NCBI GenBank assembly: GCA_002189035.1
Contig: NEEC01000004.1
Location: forward strand, 1,984,001-2,048,000
Length of the DNA stretch: 64,000 nt
Origin: Utricularia gibba
Lineage: Eukaryota; Plantae; Magnoliophyta
Reading direction: 5' to 3'
Shown: positions 6,801 through 64,000 of the stretch, one piece after another
Layout of the letters: each line of letters begins with the position of its first letter
Position numbering within the stretch: position 1 is the stretch's first letter
Translations under genes and position numbers: made by a program
The notes under the pieces: model-generated
Database searches by the model: none
Seen by the model: the letters and a program-made list of their open reading frames with translations, nothing else
Told to the model about the DNA's origin: nothing

Positions 6801-7511
6801 AGAAGTTTGTGAATTCACATCAATGCTAACAAATGTAAGTAAATAAATAAGAAACAACATCATTGCAATTTACATGAATTATAATAGTTTTATTCAACCA
6901 TAGGATTGGAGTATAATCTTAATATTTCAATGATGAAATCCACCATGATGGTGTACTATGAATAAAGTTTGAAGCTATTTGTGAAATACAAAAACTTTTG
7001 CAGCATGGTCTGGAGAATAAGTAAAGTGTTGTTCATAACCAAAACAAAAAAACAAGGATTTCCTTTGAAAATTGAGGGCTGGTAGATTATACCTGATAGT
7101 TTTAAAGAGGGATCAGTAATCTAAATTTTTTTTAGATATTTTGATTATATTATTATTAATTAAATATATAATTGATTTTATTCGATTGTTCATTCATTAA
7201 ATTAATTAAACATAGATTTAATTCGTACCCATTTATCTTATTATTTAAATAAAAATAAATAATTTTAATCAAAACTGACTACAATTCATGTTGGTCCTTA
7301 CCATCACAACTTTTCAGTTTGTGACTGTTAATAACTGGAACTCGTACGGGTGGCTACCAAATACACTGCATGTGACAACATTCAACTTGGGCTGGTTTTA
7401 ATGGCTTATTGATGGACGATAGAAAACAAAGCTGGGGGCGGACCCCTACATGGGGTCAGGCTCCCGCCCCTTGATTCTAAGCACACAAAAATAGTGAAGC
7501 TCAAAGTTCCT

Positions 7512-7517
7512 TATAAA
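7512..7517 (+). promoter_or_regulatory. Candidate TATA box of the decarboxylase-family gene
   Basis: TATAAA 43 nt upstream of the ATG at 7560. Confidence 0.4.
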
Positions 7518-7559
7518 GACAATGCATACCTCATTAGAACTCCGCGCATCGGACACGAG

Positions 7560-9116
7560 ATGGGGAGCACGCCAACTCTGGAGTCCGAGAATGGATTCGC
7601 TGGGAGTCTGAACCCGCTGGATCCGGAGGAGTTTCGTCGACAAGGCCATCTCGTCATTGATTTTCTGGCTGATTACTACAAGAATGTCGAAAAATATCCT
7701 GTTAGGAGCCAAGTCAAGCCCGGCTATCTAAAGCAACGGCTGCCGGAGACGGCGCCCTATTCACCGGAACCGATAGAGGAGATTCTGACAGATGTGAAAA
7801 AAGATATTTTACCGGGGATCACACACTGGCAGAGCCCAAATTACTTCGCTTACTTCCCTTCTAGTGGGAGCATTGCGGGGTTTCTGGGGGAAGTGTTGAG
7901 TTCTGGTTTTAATGTTGTCGGATTCAACTGGATGTCGTCGCCTGCGGCGACGGAGCTAGAGAGCATTGTCATGGATTGGCTTGGAAAAATGTTGAAGTTG
8001 CCGGAATGCTTTCTATTTTCTGGAGGGGGAGGCGGAGTTCTCCAGGGGACCACCTGTGAGGCACTTTTGTGCACGGTGGTCGCCGCCAGGGACCAGGCGT
8101 TGAAGAGGCTTGGGAGAGACTGTATCAACAAATTAGTGGTGTACGGTTCCGATCAGACTCACTCCGCATTGAACAAGGCGGCGAAGATCGCGGGGATCGA
8201 CCCTGGAAATTCTAGGGCCATTGTCACTACCAGGGAAACAGCATTCGAGTTGACTGCTGAAGCACTACGGGCTGCGATTACTGCAGATATCGAGGCTGGA
8301 CTGGTGCCACTCTTCTTCTGCGCCACCGTGGGAACCACTTCCTCCACCGCCGTCGATCCATTGGCGCCATTGTGCAAAGTTGCCAAGGAGTACGGTGTTT
8401 GGGTCCACGTCGATGCGGCGTACGCCGGGAGCATTTGCATCTGCCCAGAATTCAGGCACTTCATCGACGGCGTAGAATACGCCGATTCCTTCAGCTTCAA
8501 CGCTCATAAATGGTTCTTCACGACGCTTGACTGCTGCTGTCTCTGGATCAGAAACCCGACTTCTCTCGTAAAAGCCCTGTCTACAAACCCTGAATTCCTT
8601 CGAAACAGGGCTTCTGAAAGCCAACAAGTTGTCGATTACAAGGATTGGCAGGCGACTCTCAGTCGCCGGTTCCGATCACTGAAACTGTGGCTCGTCCTCC
8701 GCAGCTACGGCGTCGTTAATCTTCGTCGATTCCTCAGAAACCACGTGAAAATGGCTCAAAACTTCGAGCTACTCCTGGGGATGGACAAACGTTTCCAGGT
8801 CGTGGTGCCCAGAAACTTCTCCATGGTATGCTTCCGGTTTTTTCCATGCAGTGGCGATGTCCCGTTGCAGGAGGAGGATGCCAACAAGTTGAATTCGAAG
8901 CTGTTGGAGTCGATAAATGAGTCCGGTAAGATTTACATGACGCACACGGTGATCGGCGGAGTGTTCGTCATGAGATTCGCCATCGGCGCCAGCTTGACGG
9001 AGAATCGGCATATCGACTTCGCCTGGAATGTTATTCAGGAGCATGCAAACGCTGTGCTGCTACCTAACACCAAGGGTGGCACAAACGGCCATCACCATGA
9101 CGACGTGAAGATGTGA
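7560..9116 (+). CDS. Group II PLP-dependent aromatic amino acid decarboxylase family, TyDC clade, intronless, 518 aa; predicted aromatic acetaldehyde synthase
   Basis: Single open frame with [44 protein letters not shown]-lysine NAHKW (K317), STNPEFLRN (F346) and [12 protein letters not shown] (S368). First in-frame ATG is 7560; the track start at 7494 is a GTG. Confidence 0.95.
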
Positions 9117-9789
9117 AGTTGGTGTGGTACCTCCAGTTATTCCATATTTCAACATGCTTGTTATGATTTACAACACAGGTAATAGGTGGATGAAGTGCTT
9201 AGTAGAGGTTGGAATATGAAAATCATCTAATAGATGATTGATTGAGTTCAATGGTACCTCAATACATGCAAAAGTTACATGGGAAGCGACATAGAGTAGT
9301 ATTTAAATCAATTACTCAAAAAAATAAAAAAATTGGATGTTTTTTTTTGTAAATATAGGATGCTCAGTCAATATCTTAATTTTTGGTGGTATAAAACATT
9401 ACCTTTTATGAATGACGCAAGAACAAGACATAGATCTACTTTGTGAAATTTAATGTCTTTTGAGTCTTTCAAACTATTTCATTGAATGTTAGAGATAGTG
9501 ATTAGTGCAAAACTATGTATTTTTGGACAAATAATGATGGAAATTTTGTAGTAATTAGTTCAAAAATTATTGCTTGAAACTTGGAATTAGAAAGGTAGCA
9601 ATCAAACTTGGAGCACCATAGCACTTTCTGATTGCAGAACAATTAAACAAAACCTTTTTTGATAAAAATGTGTTGCATATTGAAGGATTTTGGGCTACTA
9701 GTAGATTGTAATTAGAAGTTTTGACAATATCTAACATAAGTTCTAAGAAGTCACATGTATTATGCATACTAGAAGAAAAATGATTAGGC

Positions 9790-12700
9790 AAACAAGCAAG
9801 TTTTGTCTATCTAAGAATGCTTGGTTGCTTGAGATGGGTTATTACATCCTAATGTCGGAAAGACTCATATGATCTAGATATCTGAAGTTTTAGGAGGATT
9901 AGAGGTTATTTTGTAGTATGTTCAAGGTATCAATAAAATGAATATTAACTTAGAGTCATTAGGAGTTAGAAGTTTCATTGAAAATACACTTATTGACGTT
10001 TTAGCATTGCTTTAACCAACAAGTTCTTAACAATTGGTAGATCTATCTTAAGATGTATCTCCAATAACTACTACTCCAGTGGTAGAACAATTAAAAAGTC
10101 AACTAAAGCTCTTATTCCCAACACAAGATGCAATCATACTAATTTTTATATAGATGACATATACTTATTAATTGACATATGGAGTAGATTGATACTCTAA
10201 AGTAACAATTAGATTTGGAGTTTGGTATGAAGGGCTTAGTTGCAACTAAAAGGAATGTTTTTTTCTTAACTATACTTGTTATAGTCATCAAGTGATGGAG
10301 AGGTATGGTATGAGAGACTGTAAGTCAATGTTAGTGTTAATGAACCCAACTATTAAGTTGTCAATAGATTTTTGTCCCAAAAGAGCTAATGAAAAACAAG
10401 AAATAGAGAACATGCATTTCTCCATCAATGGCATTGGTAATGTATGTTACGATGAGTATAAGGTAAGATATTGTCTATCCCATCAGTTGCATCAATAGAT
10501 ACATGTCAAATCTTGGATGCATGCATTGGAAGGATGCTAAATGACTATTGTGTATTTGAAAGTAACAACAGTGTTTTGTCATGTTTTGTAGACTTAGACT
10601 TAGCTTGGAACATAGACACAAGGAAATCAATGACATGTTTTATCATTATACTTGATGGAGTAAGGGTGACTTGGATATCTACATTACATAAATTTGTGAC
10701 TCTTTCACCAAGGGAGGTAGAGTACATAGCTTTGTCTAAAGTTGGAAAAGAAGTGATGTGACTTGATTGATTTTTAAGAGAACTTGGTCTCAAAGAGCAC
10801 AAGGTGTTTTGTGTGATAACCGAAGTTCTCTAACTTTGAATGAGAATCATATTTATCATTCAAGTACCAAGCATGTATATATTTAGTATCATTGGGTCAA
10901 TGATATGCTGAAACAAAGCATGTTTGTTTTGATGCAACTAGAAAATAATTGACTTAATGATTGATAGAAGGAAAATTCTAAAGATGTTGTATGTCTAAAG
11001 GTTTTCTATATTAAAAGATATTTATAAAATTGAATAAGTATTCTATAGGACATTCAAAAAAAAATGCAATAGTAGCAAATTCGGGTCGATTCATAGTGAG
11101 CAAGCAGTTTTTCAATTGTAAGTCCTAAGCACAAGCGAGACTAAATAGAAAATTTTAGTTGGGAAACGAGTTTCTACTCCAAAGAAATTAGTAAAAATTC
11201 AGAAAATAATATCTACACTAAAGACAAACAACATAATAAGTAAATCGGCCTGCAAGTTTAAAAGTAACAATTACACTTAATATAAAAATTAATCATGCTT
11301 AAAGGATAACCTAAATATGCTCTAGTTATTATTTTGATTCACACAGTAAAAGACACAACAAAGAAAAACATGCTAAGTTGAAAACACTCAAATAAAATGA
11401 ACGTTTAGCAGGAAATGTTAAGTGAGCTAGCAAGTTGTGAAAATGCAGAAATAAAATGCTGAAAATAAAAAATTAGTTCGGGTTTTTAAGTTAGTTTTGT
11501 GCATCAATTATCATCTTCCTCTTGTGCTGGTTGGTTCTAAAGCTTGGTGGGACAGTTCCTATTGTTTTGCTACTATTATGGGCAATGGAGGTGGTTCCAG
11601 TGTCAGTCTAGAACTATTTCTTTCACCTTCTTCACATAGGCAGATTGGTGTTTTATAGGGCTTTGAACGTTGAAGATAGGTTCCAGTGTCACGCTCGAAT
11701 TGTCCTTCATTCATCTTCTTCCTTGAAATTGGTTCAAACTTGCAGGAAAAACCTCTCCCAACATTTGAAATCTCCGTTCTTTTTCCACTCTATTGTGCAT
11801 GCCCCATGTTACGTGCCTTGGGGAGGCTTAGCTTCCTTGTTCCTTGTTTCATGTCCAATAGTCTTATCTTCTCGTGCATGTAGATGCATAGTTTTCATTT
11901 TGCCCCTAGACTAATAAATACTACATATAGTGGTCAAAATACATGGCTCAACCCAAATGGGCTGGCCGTTCATGGGCCTGAATAAATAGTAAGTTCACCT
12001 CAACAAGAAAATCAATGCAAAATAGGCTCAAAATAAGTTTTTACACAAAATAAATTTGATAACTCTAATTTTAACATTTTTACCTATTTTAACTTACTAA
12101 ATTCCTTATCTTAACATGTAAAACACCACAAATATGATTAGTTTTGACACAACATCAATGACGAAGACATTAGCCTCCTCAAGGCATAAGATGCTAATGA
12201 AGGAGACATGATTTGTGTTAAAGTATTGATCACACATTCTCTTCCAATCTGAGAGGTAGATTGTAAAAGGAAAACAAGTACACATTGCGTAGATGTGCTT
12301 ATGTTTCTCAATGAGCTAGAAGTAAAGTGATGCTACATCTTGAAATTACTTGGTTTGGATGGGTAAGTCCCATGATATGCAGCAATTATTAGAATTGCTT
12401 ACATGATGATGAATGAGAGGTGATCATTGAGGGTATGTTTTATGTCTAGATAATGTTGGGTTGAACAAATAACATAATGAAGACATAGCAAATCAAGATA
12501 ATAAATGTGATTTTGGCTCTGTAAGTAGTGTTCATTCAATATATGTTATGTTGATCCAAAGTGAACATGAAATATTGATTCTTAAAAAATTGAGTTCAAG
12601 AGGTTTCACTATGTTTTTGCCTAGTGTTTTACTTGGTTATATCATAGTGTCTTACAAATCACACCAAAGAAACCAAACACATAAATGGCAATGTCAATTA

Positions 12701-20267: not shown

Positions 20268-22612
20268 TCATTTAGGGACGTTATGTAGTATGTTCTCGAA
20301 GCTCTGAGCATATACACTGGAGAAGGCTATCAGTGCCTCGAAAGTCTTGGGAAGGTTGGTTTTCAGGTTTCGCAGAATCATGGCTCTTGTGGCCTTTATG
20401 CAGCTTGCGTATTTCGCATTCTCATCATCCACTGATTTCTTATGAGCTTCCACTTTCGCACGCCGTAGTATTAATGGATGCTTGCCATTTGAAGCTGAAG
20501 TAGTATCATCATTTGGCAAGGTCCCTCCATACTTCATTTCCATTTCAGAAAGCGCAGTGAGCTCCCGGCCTAATCTTCTCTCTAGCTTCTCACATCTTCT
20601 GCGTATATTTTGTTCTTCTTGCAGCTGTGTCAAAATACTGCTTATAGCTGACAGCAGAGAACTAATGGCCTCAGACACCATCTGCGGATAAAACATTGCT
20701 ACACATAAGTGTTGAACTGAATATTATAGTATGACTGAGTTGTCTGAATCATATCTATAATATAAGGTCCACGACGTGGACTCAGACATATGAACCACGG
20801 TAAGAGAAGGAAAAATGTGGTGTACCATTTCGGGTAACTTGTCAAGTGTCTGCAACCATTTTTCCAGGAGTTGATGCAACATTGTCGAGTTTTTACTCCA
20901 GGGGCCATCGATATCACGAATCCCTTTTGTGAGCTTTGTCCATTCACACAGGGCCCTTATGTACTCCCGTTGAAATTTCACAAGGCTGCAAAAGTTTTGG
21001 TACCAAGAGGAAACTTCAGTTTGCAGTTGACATGCAGCCAACACTAGGTACTCGGTAGTTGGTTCAACAAATGATTCATCCACTAAATGATTCAGCTGCT
21101 GAGAAATATGATTCTGGATTCGATGACATTTATGCATGGTTCGCCACATGTGCATCATCCTGCACAAAAGCATAAGAGCATTCTGTTACTCGAATGGTTA
21201 TGGAGGACAAAAAACACTAACTTAACATGCACAATGACTCTACCCTGATGCTAGAGCAATCAGCTGAGGATGCAGTTCCTCATTTATGAGCACCAGTATG
21301 TTCGAAGAACATTGCTCAATCGATTCTTGAAGAGATAGGAGGCGAGATTCTAAACTTTCAACTGCTATGCGAGTTTTTTCAACGTTCATATCATCTTTTG
21401 CGTCTTCTTGTCTCTGCAGCAATGAAGATTTTCTGATGTACTCCATCTTAGCTACTTCTTCATCCTGTCAAACAAATACTCCGCTCAATAACAATCAGGT
21501 TAACTTTTTACAGCCCTCAATAGGTCTTAACTACCTTAATGTTTTTGTAGAGTTTCTGCTCTTCCGAGTAAAGCTTCTCAAGGGTGAGGCAATGAGCTCC
21601 CGGCTTACATGGTTCAACTTCACCAACCAGGTCTCCTTGTTCTTTTGAGTAACGAAAAGATCTTGAGGACCAATTCCAAGACAGGGCACTGAAAACTTTT
21701 GCCGAATTGCTTTTATTCCCTGAATACCAAGACAATATACAATGTCAGAAGAACAACCACATAATGAGGATATAGGAATCAAGTCAGGGCGGGTGGGGGA
21801 GTGTGGGTACCTGTGTTCACTTTAAGACTATGATGAAGAGAAATTGCACTCATGTCAATGTCGATGAAGACTGCCACATCCTTCACAGTAGCAGACGCTT
21901 TCAAGAAATAATCATCTAAGTTTTTAATGATGGAACCCAAGCTCTTCTTGCCTCTCCAGGCTACCACAGGAGCATCTTCGTTGTCCTTCATCCAGCTAGA
22001 AGTCGATGAATTATCATCGAGATGATTGATCTGCTGTCCTGAAAGCTCGGCCTGATCTTCAAAGAAAGCGCCATCTTTCTCCACTTCAGTGAATTTTCTA
22101 CATTTCTTTTCATCATCGTCTACAGACTCAACACTTGAATCATCCCAGTTCTCCCTGATCTCCTCACCATCAATATGCCCTGTATGTTCACGAGAAGCCG
22201 AACCAAAGAGTTCCCAATACTCAAAAGAAGTACCAGGGGGCGGAGGTGGAGGATGGTCAATTTCCCCATCACTTTCAATGATGTCATCATGTTCAGACTT
22301 CGTTTCTAGTGGTTTTTCAGCCGGATTCCGACTATCTGGGCTGAAGGGAGGAGGTGGTGGCGGTGATGGAGGCAAAGGTGGGGGAGGAGAGGGCGAAAAT
22401 CCTGCACCAGAAGCCGTTTCCTCGGCTTCCAAAGACTGAGATTCAGTGAACTGCCTCAGTGTAAGGCCAGTGTTTATCAATGATCTCAGATAGGCTAGCT
22501 GTGCATCAGCAAACTCCTTTCTACATCGCATCAACTGTTTCATCAACCTCTTCCGTTCCTCGCAAATTCTTAATCTTTCCCCTTTATCAACTTTCGACGC
22601 CACACAACCCAT
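20268..22612 (-). CDS. DUF630/DUF632 protein (NRG2/APSR1/REL2 family), 5 exons
   Basis: N-terminus MGCVASKVD..CEERKRLMKQL..YLRSL..TG..LRQF (DUF630), poly-Pro tract, then DUF632 motifs LDDYFLKAS, HCLTLEKLYSEEQKLY, ELHPQL, SWYQNF and VSEAI. Donors and acceptors at 21810, 21719 and onward are canonical GT-AG. Confidence 0.9.
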
Positions 22613-38238: not shown

Positions 38239-38805
38239 TTAACAGAAGCTCCAAAGCCTGATATCACCTTCCTCAAAGGAATCCTCCATTGTATGAGAAT
38301 CCAAGAAGGAGCCATTAAGCATCATATCATAATAATTGGGAGACTCCATGTTGAACCAAGAAAGCACCTCTAGATCAACCCCACCTTCCTCCTCGGATCG
38401 CAGTCGAATCGGCGTCGGGTGCGTCGGCGAACCCGTCTCGTTCGATGAGGACGAAGAAGAAGGCTCCGGGACCAAACCCTTGTACCTGGTATCGGCAGCG
38501 GCGGCCGCGGCCACCCTCTGGATCGTCTTCGGAGACATGGCCGGTTTTTGTGGCTGTGAGCTGAGAAACTGGTCCCTTGAAGTTGGAAAATTGAGGCTTG
38601 TGGAGGAGTAGCCCTTGAGACACAAATGGGCTGCATCGTAGGCTCTGGCTGCAGCCTCCGGTGTCGAATATGACCCCAGCCATATCCTCGTCTTCTGATT
38701 TGGAGCCCTGATCTCGGAAACCCATGAGCCCCAGCTTCTCATTCTTACTCCCTTGTATTTCTTCTTCGTTTGTGCTTCCGGGGCTTTGCCTTCTCCCTTC
38801 ACCAT
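38239..38805 (-). CDS. AP2/ERF transcription factor, DREB A-5 type (ERF012/DREB26-like), intronless, 188 aa
   Basis: [46 protein letters not shown]2 domain, [13 protein letters not shown] motif, C-terminal IRLWSFC; ATG at 38805. Confidence 0.92.
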
Positions 38806-41800
38806 TGGTGGCAAGTGACTTCTCTCTTCTGGTTGATGAAGAGGCAGGATGGAAGATGGAATTTGAGTTCATTACAACGGGGTTGGCCCAATAAAAGGAG
38901 AAATCTCCATCATCTCTCCGATCTATCTATCTAACCACAGTGCAAGAAAACTAAATGCCTTTGTATTGCACATGACACTGACACGTTTTATCTGCAAGCA
39001 TGTGCCGCGAAGTTGCAGTTGAATTCCAAGCAACAAAAACACTGATTACTTGTAACACGATATTGGAGTACAGCCAAGAATTGTCTGGTTCACTGACAGC
39101 GCTCGGTCAAGACGAGCGCAGGAACGCTTCTAGCAGCCCACACCCAACAAATGTAATAATGGGCAATACATGCTTCTTTCCGAAAAAAAAAAAACAATTA
39201 AGAGTAATTTTTTTTTTTTTGCAAAAAGGGAAATGTCCTATAGAACATTTACTGAAATAATAAAATTTCATGAAAGTTAATCTGAAGAGGGCAATTATAT
39301 TTATAAGAAGGAATATTATTATGATGATGTGCAGAAGGAAAACAGCTGGCGCTTCTCTGTCCACAAAACGCGTTTGGAAATAAAACGCTCGGACAATTCA
39401 AAAGTAAATTCAGGAACGAAACCTGATAATAAACAAATAAATAAATAATAGAGCAAAATTCGAAATGTTGACTTGGTCAACGAGGAGTCATCTCCTAGGT
39501 CTGAATTAAATTGGTGCTGCACCCAAATGACATGTCCAGATAGCTTACATGGTTGATGATAGGGTAATTTTATGTCTCTATTAAATTGAATCAATCGCTT
39601 TTGCAGTGATAATGTTCACGAGAGGCCATGGGATGTGGAATTAGTTGCTTCCATCATGGTTTATGTCACCATCCTATCGTATCATGATTTATAATCAAAC
39701 GCAACTTGTTAATACCCACATTAGCTCCTAATCATATTACATATATATTGTTTTTCACTTCTTTTTTTCCTATTTAATGTAAAAAAAAAACACAAAATTA
39801 TCTGTTAAACAATCGCAATTCCAATTCCAATTTCCCTTTCATATTGAACTGCCCTTTTTGTTTACTTACTCCAAAAGTCATTAATTTATACAGCACAAAA
39901 AAATAGAACAATAAAAGCCTGTTCCATTTTCAAAGATGTTATGTTTTTCTATTTTGATTTACAGATCAAAATTTAGAATTTCAAAAATAAGAAAAAACAA
40001 GTGTAGATGAAAGCGATTATAAAAGAAAGATGATATGTATTGATTGATATTGGGGCATGGTGCATTTTCATTGAATTTGGAGTTGGAGTGCAAAGAGAAT
40101 AATTTTTTTGGCATGTAGGTGTGGCGTTGCGATCAGCCAAGATGGACAAGGGCGACTGCGAATGAATGAGCTGGCACTCGGGCACCGTACCTTTCCACTG
40201 CATCCGTACCAATTATTGCCACCTCGTGCCCATCCAAATCCGTGCAAACCTGCCTGCCACCAAATGGCTTCTTAACTCATTTTTTTAATTTGGTCATGTG
40301 CTTGAGTTGAGTCAGGTTTAATAATTTGTAATCATATTTTCAATTATTATTGAAGGAAATTGAATGCAATTATGCATTTGATTTGAATCAATTCATTGAA
40401 CCATAATTTTAAAATGCTACCCGGATGTCAAAAGAAGGCCATATGCCTTTTTTGTAATAAATTATTCGAAAATGTAATGACTGAAATGGGCAACTCAGAA
40501 GAATAGGGGATGGAGGGGACCAATTGGGCGGCAAAATGGTATGGGCTGCCTCTTCTAGGCGCATCAACAGCCTTTTAATCCAATTCAGCCATGGTGGCAT
40601 GTATGGTGGGAGAATTAAGGTCTTCTTTGGTAGAAAGTGTTATTGTATTTTAAATAATATATAGTAATTATGTATTTGTTAAGAAATTATGTTTAAGAAT
40701 ATTATGCAATATTTTGAAAAATGTTATTTTAAAATCCATGATATTTTAATCACGTTTTTTAGGGTTTATAGATCATCACAAAATAAATACAAGTCTAGAA
40801 ACATGTCTCAAGAGGAGTAATATGATAGCATAGTTGATATTGGATGTAGTACTTTGACTCCATGATATCCATTTGATGAAGATGAGAATTGTGGTTGGGA
40901 AATACTGGGGGTTTTTATTATAGGTAAAATATCTTTTACTTAATTTATTTTGTCTTGCTATGTCTTGCAAGAGTATGATGAGATTATTAAATTTATATGC
41001 TTCCTTGTTGGTTGACAGGGTTTCGTCGTAGACAGTAGAATCCTCCATGATGCACTCACAAATGAAGATGTTTTTCATGTATGTAAAGGTATGTGACATG
41101 GGTATTGTCTATTTTTACTTTATTTATGGCTTTAAAAATAGTCGAAATGAAATTGCTCTTGCAAGTGCATAATATTTATGTGACCATGAATATAGTAACA
41201 AATAATGATTTTAGCACAATATAGGAGAGTTTGTTATCATTTGAAAGAGTAGGAGTGAATTTAAACACTTCATAATGCAAATGATTATTTTAAAATGTGT
41301 CATGCTTCAACTAACTATATGATCGAAAGAGAGTGAGGTTTATTGAAAGTGAGACACAATGTTTACCAAATGTAATGTTGATGTAATGTATAAAATAATA
41401 TAATATCAATTTACAAATGAATCATATGACTCTATAAAAGATATCAACAAAGACTTCACAAATAACTACTCAATCTCATGTTTGAATGTGTTGAACATAA
41501 CTTCCTAAATGCATCTCTATTTATGGCATTTTTTTTATTTGGAACAGATTCAATGAAACAAGAGAGGAGATGAGAATGATAAACATTTAGGCCTCGTTTG
41601 TTAGGTGGGTTTAAATTAAAAGGATTTATATTATTTTATTTTATTATATCCCATAAATAATTGTTTAGAATGAAGTATGTGTTTGGTAGATAGGGTTCAA
41701 TAATATGGGATTATCAATTTTGTATGTTTGTTAGAAGTACTTATACATAGATTTTCAATACTAGAAAATATGAATTCTCTAATATACTCTTTATGTATAA

Positions 41801-42184
41801 TATAATATCTTATTATCCTATTTTGATCCCACATGTAGAAACGTGAGATTCAGATTGGGGAATTCGAAACCCTCGAGTTGTGATGTGCATGGATCTTTGG
41901 CTCATGCAACTCTGGGAGCAAGTTTGATCTATCAAAAAATTGGGTATTGGGTGATTCAACAGGTATTTTTTTCTCAAATTTGAGGCGTTTATTTCATTTG
42001 CTGGTTGAATGACCTTAACCACGTGGATTGAGCAACTGGGTGTTAGTATGTGTGATGTTTTTTGAGTAATATGGCTGTGAATTGTGCCCCTGAAACCCAT
42101 ATAATGTTGTTATACTTCTTGTGCCATATTGAGCTACATGTGTATTGTGGTTTTGTCATGGGTTGCGCACTTAGGTGTTGGTTG

Positions 42185-42972
42185 CAGAAATGGTTAGAGC
42201 AAATGTGGCTATAACAAAATGTGGGAGAAGTGGTGATAACATTAAGACCAAAAGACAGTGGAAACCTGATGAAGAGCGCTTTCTGATCCACGCTCTAAAG
42301 GATATCATTCAAGGTGGGTGGAAAGTAGAGAATGGATTCAAAGGTAATTACCTTCAAGCACTAGAGGAGGCGTTCCTCAAATTGTGTCCCGGCTCAGATA
42401 TCAAAGGCACTCCCCACATGCAATCAAAGATTCATAACTGGAAAAAAGATTACAATACCCTATCTGACTTTCTCAACAAGTCTGGTACCGGGTATGATAA
42501 CTCAACAAACACAGTAGATGCTAGTGAGGATTTGTGGGTGGAGTTCAAATAGGTATTGTTGTTCTAATATGTATGTAGTAGGTAGTTCCTATGAGATTAT
42601 TAATGTACACTTGTGGATTACATGTGCAGCACAATGAGAAGGTGTACAATTTGATGCGGTTTAAGCGTTAGCCTTACTATCCAGATTGGTGCATCATCTT
42701 TGGCAAAGATAGAGCCACTGGAGAATTTGCAGAATGTGTCCCTGATGCTGCTAATGCAACACAACAGGCTGATGACTCTATGGCTAGTTTGGAACAACCA
42801 TTGCATCTTCTTGAGTATCCTGAAGTGGAGGTTGACTCGGAAAAAAAATGGTGACCAAAGATCACATGATGCATCCTCTACATATGAAGAGTATCCCTCA
42901 TTAGGAGGGACTCCTGGAGGCCGCACAGGTAATCACACTACACCACCCGTGGTGATGAACCTAGGAAGAAGA
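42185..42972 (+). pseudogene. Harbinger ORF1 Myb/SANT-like DNA-binding protein; nonsense-mutated and interrupted by an LTR
   Basis: KRQWKPDEERFLIHAL..GWKVENGFKGNYL..SKIHNWKKDY..SGTGYD, an intron, then PYYPDWCIIFGKDRATGE. In-frame TAGs. The start position is approximate. Confidence 0.85.
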
Positions 42973-48230: not shown

Positions 48231-49587
48231 TTATACCCTTCTTTGTGTGGTCTCTCTCCATTGCGCAAACATTATCTCCGCCATTGAATCCCGCCACTGT
48301 GTCCACTCCTCTGAGTTTCCTATAGAGGAAATATGTTCATCATCTTCATATTCCTGTGAATCCGGATTGCGGTACTCTTCCGGAATGACCTCTTCCCATG
48401 GATTAGTTGGCATTTCTCATCGAATAAAATTGTGAAGCAGGGCACATGCAAGTATGATACGAGTTTGCGTTTTAATAGGATAAAAACTATAACTTCGTAA
48501 AATACCCCACCTCATTTTCATTAGACTCCATGCCCTCTCAATAACATTCCTTGCAGAAGTATACCGCATGTTGAAATATTCTTTCGCATTCTATGGAGCC
48601 ATGGACCTAGCACCCCACTCTTTCAGATGGTACCAAACACCTTTGTAGGGTACTAGAAATCCCTCTGCGTTTGTGTAGCCATTATCACACAAGTAATAAT
48701 GCCCTACAAAAAAATGGAATACATGAAAGTTAGTCATAACTATGGATTTCTACACATTGTAAGCACCTACCTTTGCGTACAGTGAATGCTCTTTGTCGAC
48801 AAACTACATCTCGCAGCGCCCTGCTATCAGCAACGGATCCCTCCCAACTGGACAACAAATAGATGAACATGAGCTTATCATCATACACTCCTAGCACATT
48901 AGTGGACACGATTCCTTTACGATTCCTCCACTTTGGTTTATCCTGATTCTTGACTTTCACCTGAAAATATGAACCATCCAATGCACCCAAGCAATTCTGA
49001 AAATTAGAGCAGAAAGTTACAACATGCAGAATACACGTTGCACATCCACAACTATGAAGAAAAATCTTCTTGCATACCTCAAAAAATTTGAAGCTAGAAT
49101 TGGGATCAGAAACATCAATTGGCATAGGTGTCTTAAGTAAATTTTGGTGCAATGACAGCACCGCCGACAATACCACATTGAAATATTTGGACACTATCCA
49201 ACTGCTTTGCATGAATTCAAATTTCTGTTGCCTTGTTTTTCTGTGATGACCTAAAATACCCAAAAACAATGCAACTTCCTCTGGAACATCGACATACCTT
49301 GAAATGGTTAGTCCACCATTACTTCGAAGAACATAACATGACTTGTTGAAGACATCTGCACTTAATCGTAAGTTTTCAAGACAAGCACTCCTTGAATCAA
49401 ATAACAAGGCAGTCAAATGCTCTATTTGTCGTGGTATCTTTTCTCGGTATGAGAACCGAATTCTCCTATCGGTTGGTGTACAACAGAAATGCAACATTAT
49501 AACAATCATAACTCGCATAATACATAGATGCTGACCAACACAATGTGCCGTAGCAAGGGCAGCCAAAATAATCTTCTTTGAAACCAT
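48231..49587 (-). pseudogene. Harbinger DDE transposase (DDE_Tnp_4 type), 2 introns, in-frame stops
   Basis: CLGALDGS, WEGSVADSRAL, YYLCDNGY, ARNVIERAWSLMKMRWGIL and ACALLHNFIR; TAG at 48591-48593 and TGA at 48417-48419. Confidence 0.92.
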
Positions 49588-52500
49588 TGCAACAACCTCA
49601 ATAAGCAACGCACAATCTACTGCAATGTTCGGAAAAAAAAAAACCGACTCCATCATATGCGAAACAAAAAATAAGTACTCTTGGCTTAAATTGAAGTATG
49701 GGTTTTCGTTAAAATATCAGAATTCGAATTCACTCACCATATACCTAGAAAAACCCAACAGATTTGTGTTGAAGAGGATGAACAAATACACAGATTTAAT
49801 GTTACGAATTTTCTTATGGAGTAGAAGGGTATTATCGACCAAGTTGTATTTGTGTGAGATGGGTTTCTCAAAACCCACCTCACACGTGGGTTTTGTGAAA
49901 CTAGCAGCTGCAGGTTTAATTCGGGATAATACAAACCCTTGTGTTTTACTAAACCATCCCAACAAACACATACAACTCTTTTTACTCAAGGGTTTAGAGG
50001 GCTAAACCCACCTAACAAACGAAGCCTTAATGTTTCACCACACTTGGCTCAAAGTGATAGGATTTTACACTAAAAATATAGTATAAAAATATCAAAGGAT
50101 TATGTGTTGCTAGCCTAACACAGTCCCAAACACAATAGGCTTAAAATACTTTAATTTTTTTTAAAAAATAATTCTTCAATTATTCTCATATTCATCTCCA
50201 TTGCCTTCATACTCTACACTTTCAAATCCTAATTGTTCCTTCTTATTCTTCATTTGAACAAGATTTTGAACACTCCCCAAATTATCCTCGGATTCAAGTT
50301 TCATTAGATTAATTATCATTTTTATTCAAATTTCATATTTGAATTTCTCAAAGAAGATTTTTCTATGGAACTTTGTGAAAATATTTGCATGTTACCTACT
50401 TTATATTGAATCATAAGTTTTTTTTTTTTTGGTAGCAGCTTGAATTGCATGAAAATGCATCTGAAAATCTTCAACTTTATTGAAATGAAATGAATTTTTT
50501 GCTATCTGTGTTGCACCCTTATTGTCCATATAGAAAGTAGTAGGTTGAGATTGATTTAAATCAACTTCTTCAAACATCTTACAAAGATAATGACTAATTT
50601 GAGATAGATGAAGTAGAAATATATCTCACCTCTACTATGAACTAGACCACTACCAATTTTCTTTTCATATTTCATAAAAAAAGGTGTTTCATTGAACTAA
50701 AAAATATACTAATATGTGCTTTTACAATTTGTGTTTCCAACATAATCACTATCAAAAAAGCCTAAAATTCTTGGTTGTTCATTGTTTGAGCAGGAATAAA
50801 AGATTTCATAATCCAACGTTTTCTTGACGTAATGCATGACTTACTTGACTACTACAAAGTGAAAAACTTTCAGTCCTTTCACAAATCTGGAAAGAATATT
50901 AACACAATGGAACATATCTGGTTTGGTGTGACTAAGGTAAATCATATTACCAACAAAACTAACTTATACATGCTCACTAATAATTTTTTTCCCATCTACT
51001 TTTTTATGTAAGAAGGTTTGTTGACTATGTGAATAAAGCCTTTAAATTCAAAGAATTTTATAATTATTTCATTCTAAACTTTTGAAACCTGTTTTAGATC
51101 ATTTAGAACCTTTTTCATCCTTAATGTTTTGTATTCTTCACCTTTTTTTATAACCTTGTGGTTGTTTAGTAGATGACTTCAATGAAGACATCATTTTATG
51201 TTCATATGATGAACAAATCAGGCATAATGAGCTGCAAGATCTAAAAGCAACTTCACAATATCAAATCTAGATATAGATCTGAACATTTCACTATTATTCA
51301 CATCATATATCTATGAATATTCTTTTGTGACTAAGTTTAACTTTTTTTTTATCTATATATTGTTAGTTCTGTATTTCATTCTATAAATCCACTTTAAACC
51401 AATTGATTCAGTTGTTAGATTAGGAGATCCCTGCACAAGTTCTCATGTATCATTATTTTATAATGGAATTCATCTCATTCTGCATAGATAACCTCCACCC
51501 TTCATCTTGCACAGCTTCTTCATAGGTTGTGGGATCAATCATAACACAATAGGAGAGGACATCAACTGATAGGTCCACTGTTTGATTAATAATGTTATTT
51601 AGTTTAGTAAGTATGCTTTTTATCCTTACACTTTGATCTTGGTCTATGTCAAATGTACTTTTTGTTTCAGGATTAAAGGAGCTTGCATTATCAGATACTT
51701 GATCACTCTCAGTTTATGATGATGGCTCAAAAATATTTTCTTGAGATAAGCAGTAATTTGTGTTTTTTTTATTGTAGCCTCAGATGTGCTATCTTATTGC
51801 TCATAATTCTCCGTTTCAATTTGATTCTCATCATATCTTATTCCAATAGTTTTATTTCCTATTTCAATTTGATTCTCATCACATCTAGTGCTGCTGCATT
51901 AATGTGGAATACTAAACTATATAAGTAGTGATCCTGTTTTATAGAAGATAGCGTACTTATCTCACATTGATGATTCTCTTGGAAATTTATCTCACATCAT
52001 ATAACTTTTTGAAATTGGAAAGCATATATGAAGTTTGTCGAATGTCATCTTTAAAATCAAGAAGTTATCAGTAGAAAATCAAGAAATGAAAGTCTACCAT
52101 TACAATATACCTTGTTGAAGACCAACCAAAAAGAATTATGATGCATTAAAGTTGGTGGATCATACTTCTATTTTTATTTAGTGTCATCTAAAGATGAGAG
52201 ATTATAAACAAGTAGCAATATGGGCAAAAATGATTATGTAGACTAATTTTTATGGACGGTAAGGAAATTGGGCTAATTTGCGTTAAGTAAACACGAATGA
52301 TAAAAAGTGCTCCACGTAAGCAAGACCAAGCGAGACTCTTTTCCACTAAGTATTTTTATTTGTAGTGTGTCTATATATAATTTAGTTAGGTTTTTAATTT
52401 AATTAATAATTGTATAATTAGTTATTTTATTTTATTTTTCTATAAGTTTGTTATAATTAATAAAGAAATTTTATGTTAAAATTTTATATAATTTGATTTA

Positions 52501-61952: not shown

Positions 61953-64000
61953 ATGGGTCCTTACTTTGCTGGTTTAATCATTCCGCTCGTGCTTACGGCT
62001 ATTCTTCGTAACAAGAAAAAGGATCAAAAAAGAGGCGTGCCAGTGGATGCTGGTGTGGAGCCAGGATATGCAATTAGAAACTCCAGATTTCCGAAACCAG
62101 TGGAATCGGCGTGGGAAGGTGTCACAACACTAGCTGAACTGTTTGAGCAGTCATGCAAGAAATATTCCAACTTGAGATTTCTGGGAACTCGGGAAATAAT
62201 TGCTAGAGAAGTGGAAGTTGTTGATGGAAGATCATTTGAAAAACTTCATCTTGGAGACTATAAATGGTTGAGTTATGGACAAGCATTTGAGGCCGTGTGT
62301 AACTTTGCCTCTGGTTTAGTCAATCTTGGGCATCAAAGGGGAGAACGAGCAGCAATCTTTGCTGATACGCGTGAAGAATGGTTCATCGCTCTGCAGGTAT
62401 ATTTGGCAGGTTTAGTTCTGAAGTTTGTTTATTATTTTTTAAGTGTAAAGCGATCTCCTCTGAAACCCTGACCTTCATTTTCACCTTTCTTCTCACTCAA
62501 AAGATTGTGCAAATTGAAGATATCTGATATTTTGTAATCAGGGTTGCTTCAGGCGCAACATCACTGTTGTCACCATATACGCATCGCTTGGGGAAGACGC
62601 TCTTTGTCATTCATTTAATGAGGTCATCTTCCTCTATAAGTTTTTCTACTTTTCGATACCCTTTTGCTGTCAGCTAAAGCTGTCCGATGTGTTCTCTAGA
62701 CGGAGGTCACTACAGTGATTTGTGGGTACAAGGAGCTGAAGAAAGTAGCAAATATTTGTGGGCAGCTTGATACTTTGAAGCATGTAATTTGTATGGATGA
62801 TGAGTTTCAGTCTGATTCTTCATTGCTGGCTGGAATAAGCAATTGGACTGTAGTTTCCATGAACAATGTGGAGAAAATGGGACGTGAGAATCCAGTGGAC
62901 CCAGATTTACCTATTGCTGCTGATGTTGCTGTGATAATGTACACAAGTGGCAGCACTGGTATGCCTAAGGTCCGTATACATAAGTTAAAATATGAAATCA
63001 TTTCGCAAACTTCTCTTTTCTTTATTTGGTCAGTTAATGTTTTCAGTAATAATTTTTTTTATTCGATTGTATGACTTTTGGTTTTTTATTCATACAGGGT
63101 GTGATGATGACTCATCTTAATGTTTTATCAACGGCATCAGCTGTAATGACCCTAGTTCCAGGGCTAAGAACTGATGATGTTTACTTGGCATACTTGCCAC
63201 TAGCTCACATTCTTGAGTTGGCAGCAGAGGTATGGAATTAGGGAGGAAAACTAATTATTCTCTAGCTCTAAGATTCTGATCCATGTCTTCTGTGGATCAT
63301 GTTTTGTGATATGTTTTCTTTAACTGCAGAATTTTGCAGTGGGCATAGGATGCTCTATAGGGTATGGTTCTCCATTAACTATAACTGATACTTCAAATAA
63401 GATAAAAAAGGGAACCAAGGGGGATGCTACTGTATTGAGACCAACGCTTCTGGCCGCTGTGCCAGCAATTCTTGATCGGGTTCGAGATGGTGTTCGCAAA
63501 AAGGTTTCTTTTGTTTCCTATGAAATTTTTGAGACTTTCTATTTTCATAACTGGAATGTAATTCATCAATGTTGATACCTCATGTTTATTAAATTTCAGG
63601 TAGATGCCACAGGTGGATTGTCAAAGAAGTTGTTTGATTTGGCTTATAATCGTCGTCTCTCAGCAATAAATGGCAGTTGGTTTGGATCATGGGGATTAGA
63701 GAAGCTATTTTGGAACTTCTTGGTGTTCAGAAAAATTCAAGCAATTTTGGGTAGTCGTATCCGTTTGATTCTGTCAGGAGGTGCTCCTCTATCTGGCGAT
63801 AGTCAAAGATTTATTAACATCTGTTTCAGGTTTGTGTGCCCTTTAATCTAGCATTGATGGGAATATCTTATGGTCTGTTGAATCAGAACACGTCTGTTCA
63901 CATAGATAGAGATTCCCAGTTCATGTTTCTACTTTTTTCTGATTGCAACTGACCTGCCTTATTTTTTTCAACTACTCATGTACTCTTCTCAGTGCCCCAA
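61953..64000 (+). CDS. LACS9: Long-chain acyl-CoA synthetase, LACS9-like, 5' part only
   Basis: [48 protein letters not shown]-binding [29 protein letters not shown] and LSGGAPLS over many GT-AG exons; continues beyond the window. Separation from LACS8 rests on the short N-terminus. Confidence 0.88.

Follow-up and report, generated by a model that had tools for sequence, protein, structure and literature searches.

Utricularia gibba carries an intact gene of the tyrosine decarboxylase (TyDC) clade in which the catalytic tyrosine of the large loop is replaced by phenylalanine, and we consider it likely that the product is a functional enzyme, most likely a 4-hydroxyphenylacetaldehyde synthase (4HPAAS) of separate origin. 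The gene is transcribed and under purifying selection. It lies in the 64-kb stretch of DNA that we analyzed as a whole (hereafter, the window), and the features that define it are as follows:

7560–9116, plus strand: coding sequence, free of introns, for a 518-aa protein of the family of aromatic amino acid decarboxylases (AAADs), with its stop codon at 9114–9116 (open reading frame, Pfam match, and match to the structure 6eem)
7860–7862, plus strand: codon of Ser101, the equivalent of Ser101 of Papaver somniferum TyDC (PsTyDC) (alignment)
8160–8162, plus strand: codon of His201, the small-loop catalytic histidine in the motif SDQTH, which is retained (alignment; invariant in 115 of 115 relatives)
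8508–8510, plus strand: AAA codon of Lys317, the PLP-binding lysine in the motif NAHKW (translation; invariant in all 115 aligned relatives)
8595–8597, plus strand: TTC codon of Phe346, at the position that the catalytic tyrosine occupies in the large loop (Tyr350 of PsTyDC) (translation, alignment, and four sequencing runs)
8661–8663, plus strand: AGT codon of Ser368, the residue that specifies phenolic (Ser) versus indolic (Gly) substrates (alignment)

The open reading frame spans positions 7494–9116 of the plus strand, and translation from its first ATG, at 7560, gives the 518-aa product. Residues 54–427 match the Pfam domain PF00282 (Pyridoxal_deC) almost end to end (E = 3.2e-112; profile positions 1–374 of 375). 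Among solved structures, the best match is the P. somniferum tyrosine/DOPA decarboxylase 6eem (853 bits, E = 6e-256, residues 1–500), followed by 6liu (840 bits), the Catharanthus tryptophan-type enzyme CrTDC (6eew; 677 bits), the Arabidopsis aldehyde synthase AtPAAS (6eei; about 671 bits), and Rhodiola 4HPAAS (Rr4HPAAS, 6eeq; 590 bits). The crystal structure 6eem aligns without gaps through the active-site region, which fixes the residue correspondences; the alignments are likewise free of gaps over the interval from Lys317 to Phe346. Phe346 is situated within STNPEFLRN, 29 residues C-terminal to Lys317. In HMMER alignments, it stands opposite the tyrosine of STSPEYLKN in 6eem (Tyr350 by the chain numbering of that entry), opposite the tyrosine of STNPEYLRN in 6liu, and opposite the phenylalanine of STNPEFLKN in 6eei. 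An initial annotation, made from the letters of the window, had described the TTC codon, the loop motif and its distance from the PLP lysine, the retained SDQTH histidine, and the length of the protein in the same terms, and its statement that the site corresponds to Tyr350 of the Papaver enzyme agrees with both the 6eem alignment and the chain numbering.

All three hallmarks of the plant AAAD family are present in the protein, namely the PF00282 domain, the NAHK lysine, and the SDQTH histidine. The large-loop tyrosine that characterizes a canonical tyrosine/DOPA decarboxylase (EC 4.1.1.25) is absent, and the residue found in its place, phenylalanine, is the one that characterizes large-loop aldehyde synthases. 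A second class of aldehyde synthases, to which EgPAAS and the insect AAS belong, is defined by a change from His to Asn in the small loop; the retained His201 places the U. gibba protein outside of that class. With phenylalanine at the large-loop position, the gene does not belong under the plain TyDC label.

The phenylalanine codon is constant in independent data. We mapped contigs of other sequencing runs on positions 7300–9400; as these are assembler contigs, from which rare variants are dropped, they report on the common allele only. Contigs (not raw reads) of four runs from four studies, two of DNA and two of RNA, span positions 8595–8597 and show no letter other than those of TTC, as the initial annotation had read the codon. 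Across the same four runs, 26 other sites of the coding sequence differ from the window, and the contigs are therefore not copies of the assembly. The RNA contigs span positions 7556–9150. In the orthologs, the corresponding codon is TAT in Genlisea, Sesamum, and Penstemon and TAC in Abeliophyllum.

Branch-wise dN/dS ratios were unusable, as synonymous sites are saturated in all Lamiales pairs; the ratio of approximately 0.05 obtained against Genlisea is accordingly one with saturated dS. We measured constraint instead by codon-position identities, by counts of synonymous and non-synonymous differences within the species, and by a relative-rate test. In comparisons with the orthologs of Genlisea, Sesamum, Abeliophyllum, and Penstemon, first codon positions are 79–82 per cent identical, second positions 90–91 per cent, and third positions 38–48 per cent. 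The differences between accessions in the coding sequence are mostly synonymous (22 of 26, with 4 non-synonymous). At positions that are at least 93 per cent conserved among 114 relatives, the protein departs from the consensus four times, always mildly (V330I, K331R, K350R, and E413Q). The relative-rate test against Genlisea counted 37 versus 29 unique changes (P-value = 0.33), that is, no acceleration. We also note that third positions are only 38–50 per cent identical in all Lamiales ortholog pairs, even between Sesamum and Penstemon, a saturation above that expected between families of a single order. Errors of assembly or sequencing at the codon, or decay of the gene into a pseudogene, were considered and set aside as having a negligible probability: the same TTC recurs in the contigs of four runs and four studies, including haplotypes that differ at 22 other sites of the coding sequence, the frame is open for 518 codons, and the ratio of synonymous to non-synonymous differences is 22:4.

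In a collection of 5.8 billion sequences, the closest proteins are annotated as tyrosine decarboxylases of Lamiales (75–80 per cent identity), and they come from Sesamum, Rehmannia, Abeliophyllum, Perilla, Orobanche, Primulina, Fraxinus, Genlisea, and others. Exact-sequence look-ups did not return the protein itself from the collections searched, and a homolog search with residues 290–420 alone, aimed at fragments from other Utricularia, returned nothing closer than 83 per cent. All 19 of the closest orthologs read STYPEYLRN, with tyrosine at the catalytic site. In the loop column of 115 aligned relatives, tyrosine is found in 90 sequences, phenylalanine in 19, and cysteine in 6. To place the gene, we reconstructed a tree of 43 sequences in IQ-TREE under the LG+C20 PMSF model, from which the loop columns were excluded to keep the trait itself from shaping the topology. 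In this tree, the U. gibba protein is nested in a Lamiales-specific TyDC clade (support 100/100), as sister to a gene of Genlisea aurea that retains the tyrosine (support 98/90). The Genlisea locus has other neighbors, none of which occurs within the window, and the orthology thus has no support from position. The initial annotation had assigned the enzyme to the TyDC clade, and the assignment, in the clade scheme of Torrens-Spence et al., is borne out by this nesting and by the bit scores, which are higher for PsTyDC than for CrTDC, AtPAAS, and Rr4HPAAS. Ser368 (equivalent to PsTyDC Ser372), at the phenolic-versus-indolic specificity position, and Ser101 are both present.

These relationships suggest that the phenylalanine apparently arose in the U. 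gibba lineage after its split from the Genlisea ortholog. Such changes are common in the family: on a tree of 115 sequences, at least 12 Tyr/Phe changes are required among 109 sequences, and they fall in groups labeled Rosa/Argentina, Pyrus, Acer/Dipteronia/Pistacia, Fagus/Quercus, Reevesia, Macadamia, Perilla, and others. Phenylalanine-type genes of Lamiaceae, two from Perilla (P0040 and P0101) and one from a Logan assembly (P0095), form a clade of their own, and their sister genes are tyrosine-type. The origin of the phenylalanine in U. gibba that is best supported by the trees, although not proven, is separate from those of the Lamiaceae genes, of the rosid groups, and of the aldehyde synthases of the basal paralog clade.

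Between the PLP lysine and Phe346, the protein has accumulated further changes:

8517–8588, plus strand: stretch with six further lineage-unique changes (L320F, V330I, K331R, D332N, A335S, and Y343N; codon alignment and rate test)

Together with Y346F, these make up 7 of the 37 lineage-unique changes and fall within 27 residues. The combination of F320, N343, and F346 is also found in the Lamiaceae phenylalanine-type genes, and L320F, Y343N, and Y346F are each one base away from the codon of Genlisea or Abeliophyllum. Position 320 changes often across the family, and Pyrus has Y343 alongside F346. Because the stretch was chosen after the data had been seen, we treat the clustering as only a lead and not as evidence of co-adaptation.

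The chemistry that would follow from the substitution has been worked out in related enzymes. After decarboxylation, the large-loop tyrosine, helped by the small-loop histidine, donates a proton to the quinonoid's C-alpha carbanion; when phenylalanine is there instead, the carbanion attacks molecular oxygen, and a peroxide intermediate breaks down to an aromatic acetaldehyde plus ammonia and hydrogen peroxide (bioRxiv 10.1101/404970). In yeast and in vitro, PsTyDC with the Y350F change yields only tyrosol or 4HPAA, and the change has been called "necessary and sufficient" (bioRxiv 10.1101/404970). By this mechanism, the loss of the proton-donating tyrosine from the large loop of an otherwise functional, PLP-dependent enzyme of the TyDC clade would leave the C-alpha carbanion of the substrate–PLP aldimine unprotonated after decarboxylation; the carbanion would react with oxygen, and the resulting peroxide intermediate would give an aromatic acetaldehyde together with ammonia and hydrogen peroxide. 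The predicted product is 4-hydroxyphenylacetaldehyde (or DOPAL), which reductases could convert into tyrosol or hydroxytyrosol for phenylethanoid glycosides. Judging from the published mutants and homologs, from which we infer all three, this activity, substrate, and pathway are the most likely ones.

As to the substrate, Ser101 of PsTyDC forms a hydrogen bond to the substrate's p-hydroxyl (bioRxiv 10.1101/404970), and serine versus glycine at the specificity position distinguishes enzymes of phenolic and indolic substrates (PMC11751479, PMC6770214). The context of Ser368 is TLSRRF, to be compared with ALSRRF in PsTyDC (Ser372) and ATGRKF in CrTDC. Since both serines are kept, the preferred substrate is predicted to be L-tyrosine, possibly L-DOPA; the preference between the two cannot be read from the sequence, and the olive enzyme OeAAS, for example, is strictly DOPA-specific (PMC6770214). 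As U. gibba belongs to Lamiales, phenylethanoid glycosides of the tyrosol, salidroside, and verbascoside type are a plausible sink for the aldehyde. Of the fates that the initial annotation had proposed, tyrosol and salidroside thus remain plausible, whereas benzylisoquinoline alkaloids are not a plausible product in this order.

The enzymes most comparable to the U. gibba protein are two laboratory mutants, CtTyDC Y347F of Cistanche tubulosa and PsTyDC Y350F, which are TyDC-clade enzymes with the same change from Tyr to Phe at the same loop position. Wild-type CtTyDC is a genuine tyrosine decarboxylase, and its Y347F mutant gives 4-HPAA and peroxide (PMC11751479); the PsTyDC mutant makes 4-HPAA as well, peroxide having been shown for CtTyDC. 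Orthologs from Orobanche, a member of the same family as Cistanche, belong to the clade of the U. gibba protein and are 76–78 per cent identical to it. Unlike the two engineered changes, the one in U. gibba occurs naturally in every accession sampled and is maintained by selection, and it is joined by the six other lineage-unique changes that lie between the PLP lysine and the phenylalanine of the loop. The characterized members of the clade, the TyDCs of Rehmannia and Cistanche, are decarboxylases that feed a route of TyDC plus amine oxidase (for Cistanche, PMC11751479).

Natural aldehyde synthases offer further parallels. Parsley 4HPAAS (PcAAS) was first annotated as a TyDC, but later work showed that it is a 4-hydroxyphenylacetaldehyde synthase whose physiological substrate is tyrosine (PMC10363510, PMC6770214); unlike the U. 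gibba gene, it comes from Apiales, and it was left out of our trees. AtPAAS, Rr4HPAAS, and OeAAS have phenylalanine at the large-loop position and the chemistry that we predict for U. gibba, but they belong to the basal paralog clade, and AtPAAS additionally has glycine where the U. gibba protein has Ser368 and PSNSS in place of PSSGS. OeAAS is a characterized aldehyde synthase of a Lamiales plant, yet it falls within the basal clade and is approximately 60 per cent identical to an olive TyDC (PMC6770214). Petunia PAAS (P0151) and relatives from Solanaceae and Ericales are, like the U. gibba protein, members of the TyDC clade that have lost the catalytic tyrosine, but they have valine (as in Petunia PAAS) or cysteine in its place and SDQTHF instead of SDQTHS, and they fall outside of the Lamiales clade. 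Cysteine at the loop (STNPECLRN) combined with SDQTHF was observed in six sequences (P0100, P0118, P0030, P0071, P0072, and P0093, labeled as Nicotiana, Capsicum, Nyssa, Vaccinium, Rhododendron, and Bertholletia) and makes up a third class of replacement beside phenylalanine. The Lamiaceae phenylalanine-type proteins P0040, P0101, and P0095, none of which has to our knowledge been characterized, are in the same Lamiales clade as the U. gibba protein and share with it STNPEFLRN, F320, T334, N394, and Q413; they nevertheless group apart from it with full support, and the sisters of their clade are the tyrosine-type genes of Perilla (P0079) and Phlomoides (P0099).

This resemblance to the Lamiaceae genes raises an alternative history, in which the phenylalanine would not be of separate origin. 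The U. gibba gene would instead descend from an older Lamiales paralog lineage with the loop motif STNPE, the ancestor also of the Lamiaceae phenylalanine-type genes, and its placement with Genlisea would be due to long-branch attraction. The end branches of both genes are indeed long (0.38 for U. gibba and 0.27 for Genlisea in the 43-sequence tree), F320, N343, I475, and I485 are common to the U. gibba protein and the STNPE lineage, and T334, N394, and Q413 are common to it and the phenylalanine-type members of that lineage. We compared the likelihoods of constrained trees. A tree in which the U. gibba gene and the Lamiaceae phenylalanine-type genes alone form one clade costs 51 lnL units and is rejected (AU test; P-value = 0.003), but a tree in which it joins all five genes of the Lamiaceae clade lowers the likelihood by only 7.8 lnL units and is not rejected (AU test; P-value = 0.27), and the latter tree can be explained with equal parsimony by a single gain and a later reversal or by two gains. 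It is because this second tree is tolerated that we call a separate origin best supported rather than proven. Against the shared older lineage, the sister relationship with Genlisea was recovered under a site-heterogeneous model in the absence of the loop columns, the protein matches the main tyrosine-type clade at 17 of 24 lineage-discriminating positions, and it has eight rare residues in common with Genlisea versus two with the Lamiaceae paralog clade. We therefore regard the older shared lineage as improbable, and the independent origin that the initial annotation had suggested as possible is the history toward which the tree, by its placement of the gene beside a tyrosine-type Genlisea sequence, points.

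Doubt about function takes two other forms. The enzyme might still act mainly as a tyrosine/DOPA decarboxylase, or be bifunctional, if another group or a bound water molecule donated the C-alpha proton, so that the amine stayed a major product. His201 and the remainder of the active site are unaltered, and the fold can give a mixed output of amine and aldehyde, as does PsTyDC with the H205N change (bioRxiv 10.1101/404970). However, the same Tyr-to-Phe change moved the product to aldehyde in both PsTyDC (exclusively) and CtTyDC (bioRxiv 10.1101/404970, PMC11751479), and the characterized natural enzymes with phenylalanine (AtPAAS, Rr4HPAAS, and that of parsley) are aldehyde synthases, which leaves a persisting decarboxylase with little probability. 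The protein might alternatively have little or no activity on aromatic amino acids, or have shifted to another substrate, and be conserved for a role other than the synthesis of 4HPAA or DOPAL. Cistanche provides a precedent in CtAAS, an aldehyde synthase predicted from its sequence that is inactive on tyrosine or tryptophan both in vitro and in planta (PMC11751479); the residue rule hence does not guarantee activity, and some doubt remains. The clustering of seven lineage-unique changes from Lys317 to Phe346 could be read in the same direction. Purifying selection is nonetheless strong both within and between species, the residues of the PLP site and the substrate site are all kept, the few changes at conserved positions are mild, and the protein is 70–80 per cent identical to active enzymes, and we give a weak, inactive, or diverted enzyme a very small probability. 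An aldehyde synthase that acts on tyrosine, or possibly DOPA, is in our judgment the likely reading of the gene.

The remainder of the window contains the following features:

9150–9152, no strand: break, 34 nt past the stop codon, at which contigs of three other runs depart from the window (loose contig ends at 9150 and 9152)
20268–22612, minus strand: DUF630/DUF632 gene in at least three open reading frame pieces (domain match; looks ordinary)
38239–38814, minus strand: open reading frame with an AP2/ERF domain (domain match; looks ordinary)
42175–42552: Myb/SANT-like (PF12776) open reading frame (domain match)
48730–49656: open reading frame with a weak match to DDE_Tnp_4 (domain match)
61953–63074, plus strand: two AMP-binding enzyme (PF00501) open reading frames, which are probably exons of a gene for an acyl-activating enzyme or CoA ligase

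No second AAAD copy was found within the 64-kb window, and the surroundings of the gene give no sign of a biosynthetic cluster. A connection to a 4CL gene by way of the first AMP-binding exon (61953–62468) was dropped, as a search of the PDB with that exon gave no match. The Myb/SANT pieces and the Harbinger-like transposase at 42–50 kb form a pair that is typical of PIF/Harbinger transposons. Just downstream of the decarboxylase-family gene, an open reading frame at 10471–10761 resembles the C-terminal part of a Ty1/copia polyprotein and is presumably a retrotransposon remnant. At the break, contigs of two RNA runs (X2 and X5) and one DNA run (X6) agree with the window as far as position 9150 and then continue with other sequence, which has no match anywhere in the window, and another X6 contig matches positions 9152–9385 with a different left flank. 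The accessions probably differ here in their 3' UTR by an insertion, a deletion, or a transposon.

The switch from Tyr to Phe is already known and recurrent in plants, and published work covers its mechanism, the residue that predicts it, and its sporadic, separate origins in the TyDC clade. What is new here is modest and establishes no new principle: a Lamiales TyDC ortholog with a naturally occurring change from Tyr to Phe that selection maintains, and that by the placement of the gene appears to have arisen in the bladderwort lineage after the split from Genlisea. A more far-reaching scenario is tentative, and we think it rather unlikely. In this plant, whose genome is very compact, the tyrosine-type TyDC that in other Lamiales serves together with an amine oxidase in the synthesis of 4-HPAA may have been turned into a one-step aldehyde synthase by a single substitution and then tuned by the changes between Lys317 and Phe346; a two-enzyme route would thereby have collapsed into one, and the tyramine synthesis of this clade would have been lost. 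The gene is also the naturally occurring equivalent of two engineered enzymes, CtTyDC Y347F and PsTyDC Y350F, which are used in the production of tyrosol, salidroside, and norcoclaurine, and is a ready candidate part for such work. For the family, it would add one dated and apparently separate case to the recurrent switch, in a clade whose characterized members are true decarboxylases. For U. gibba, annotation of the gene would read tyrosine decarboxylase although an aldehyde is most likely made, which would alter the reconstruction of pathways in this plant.
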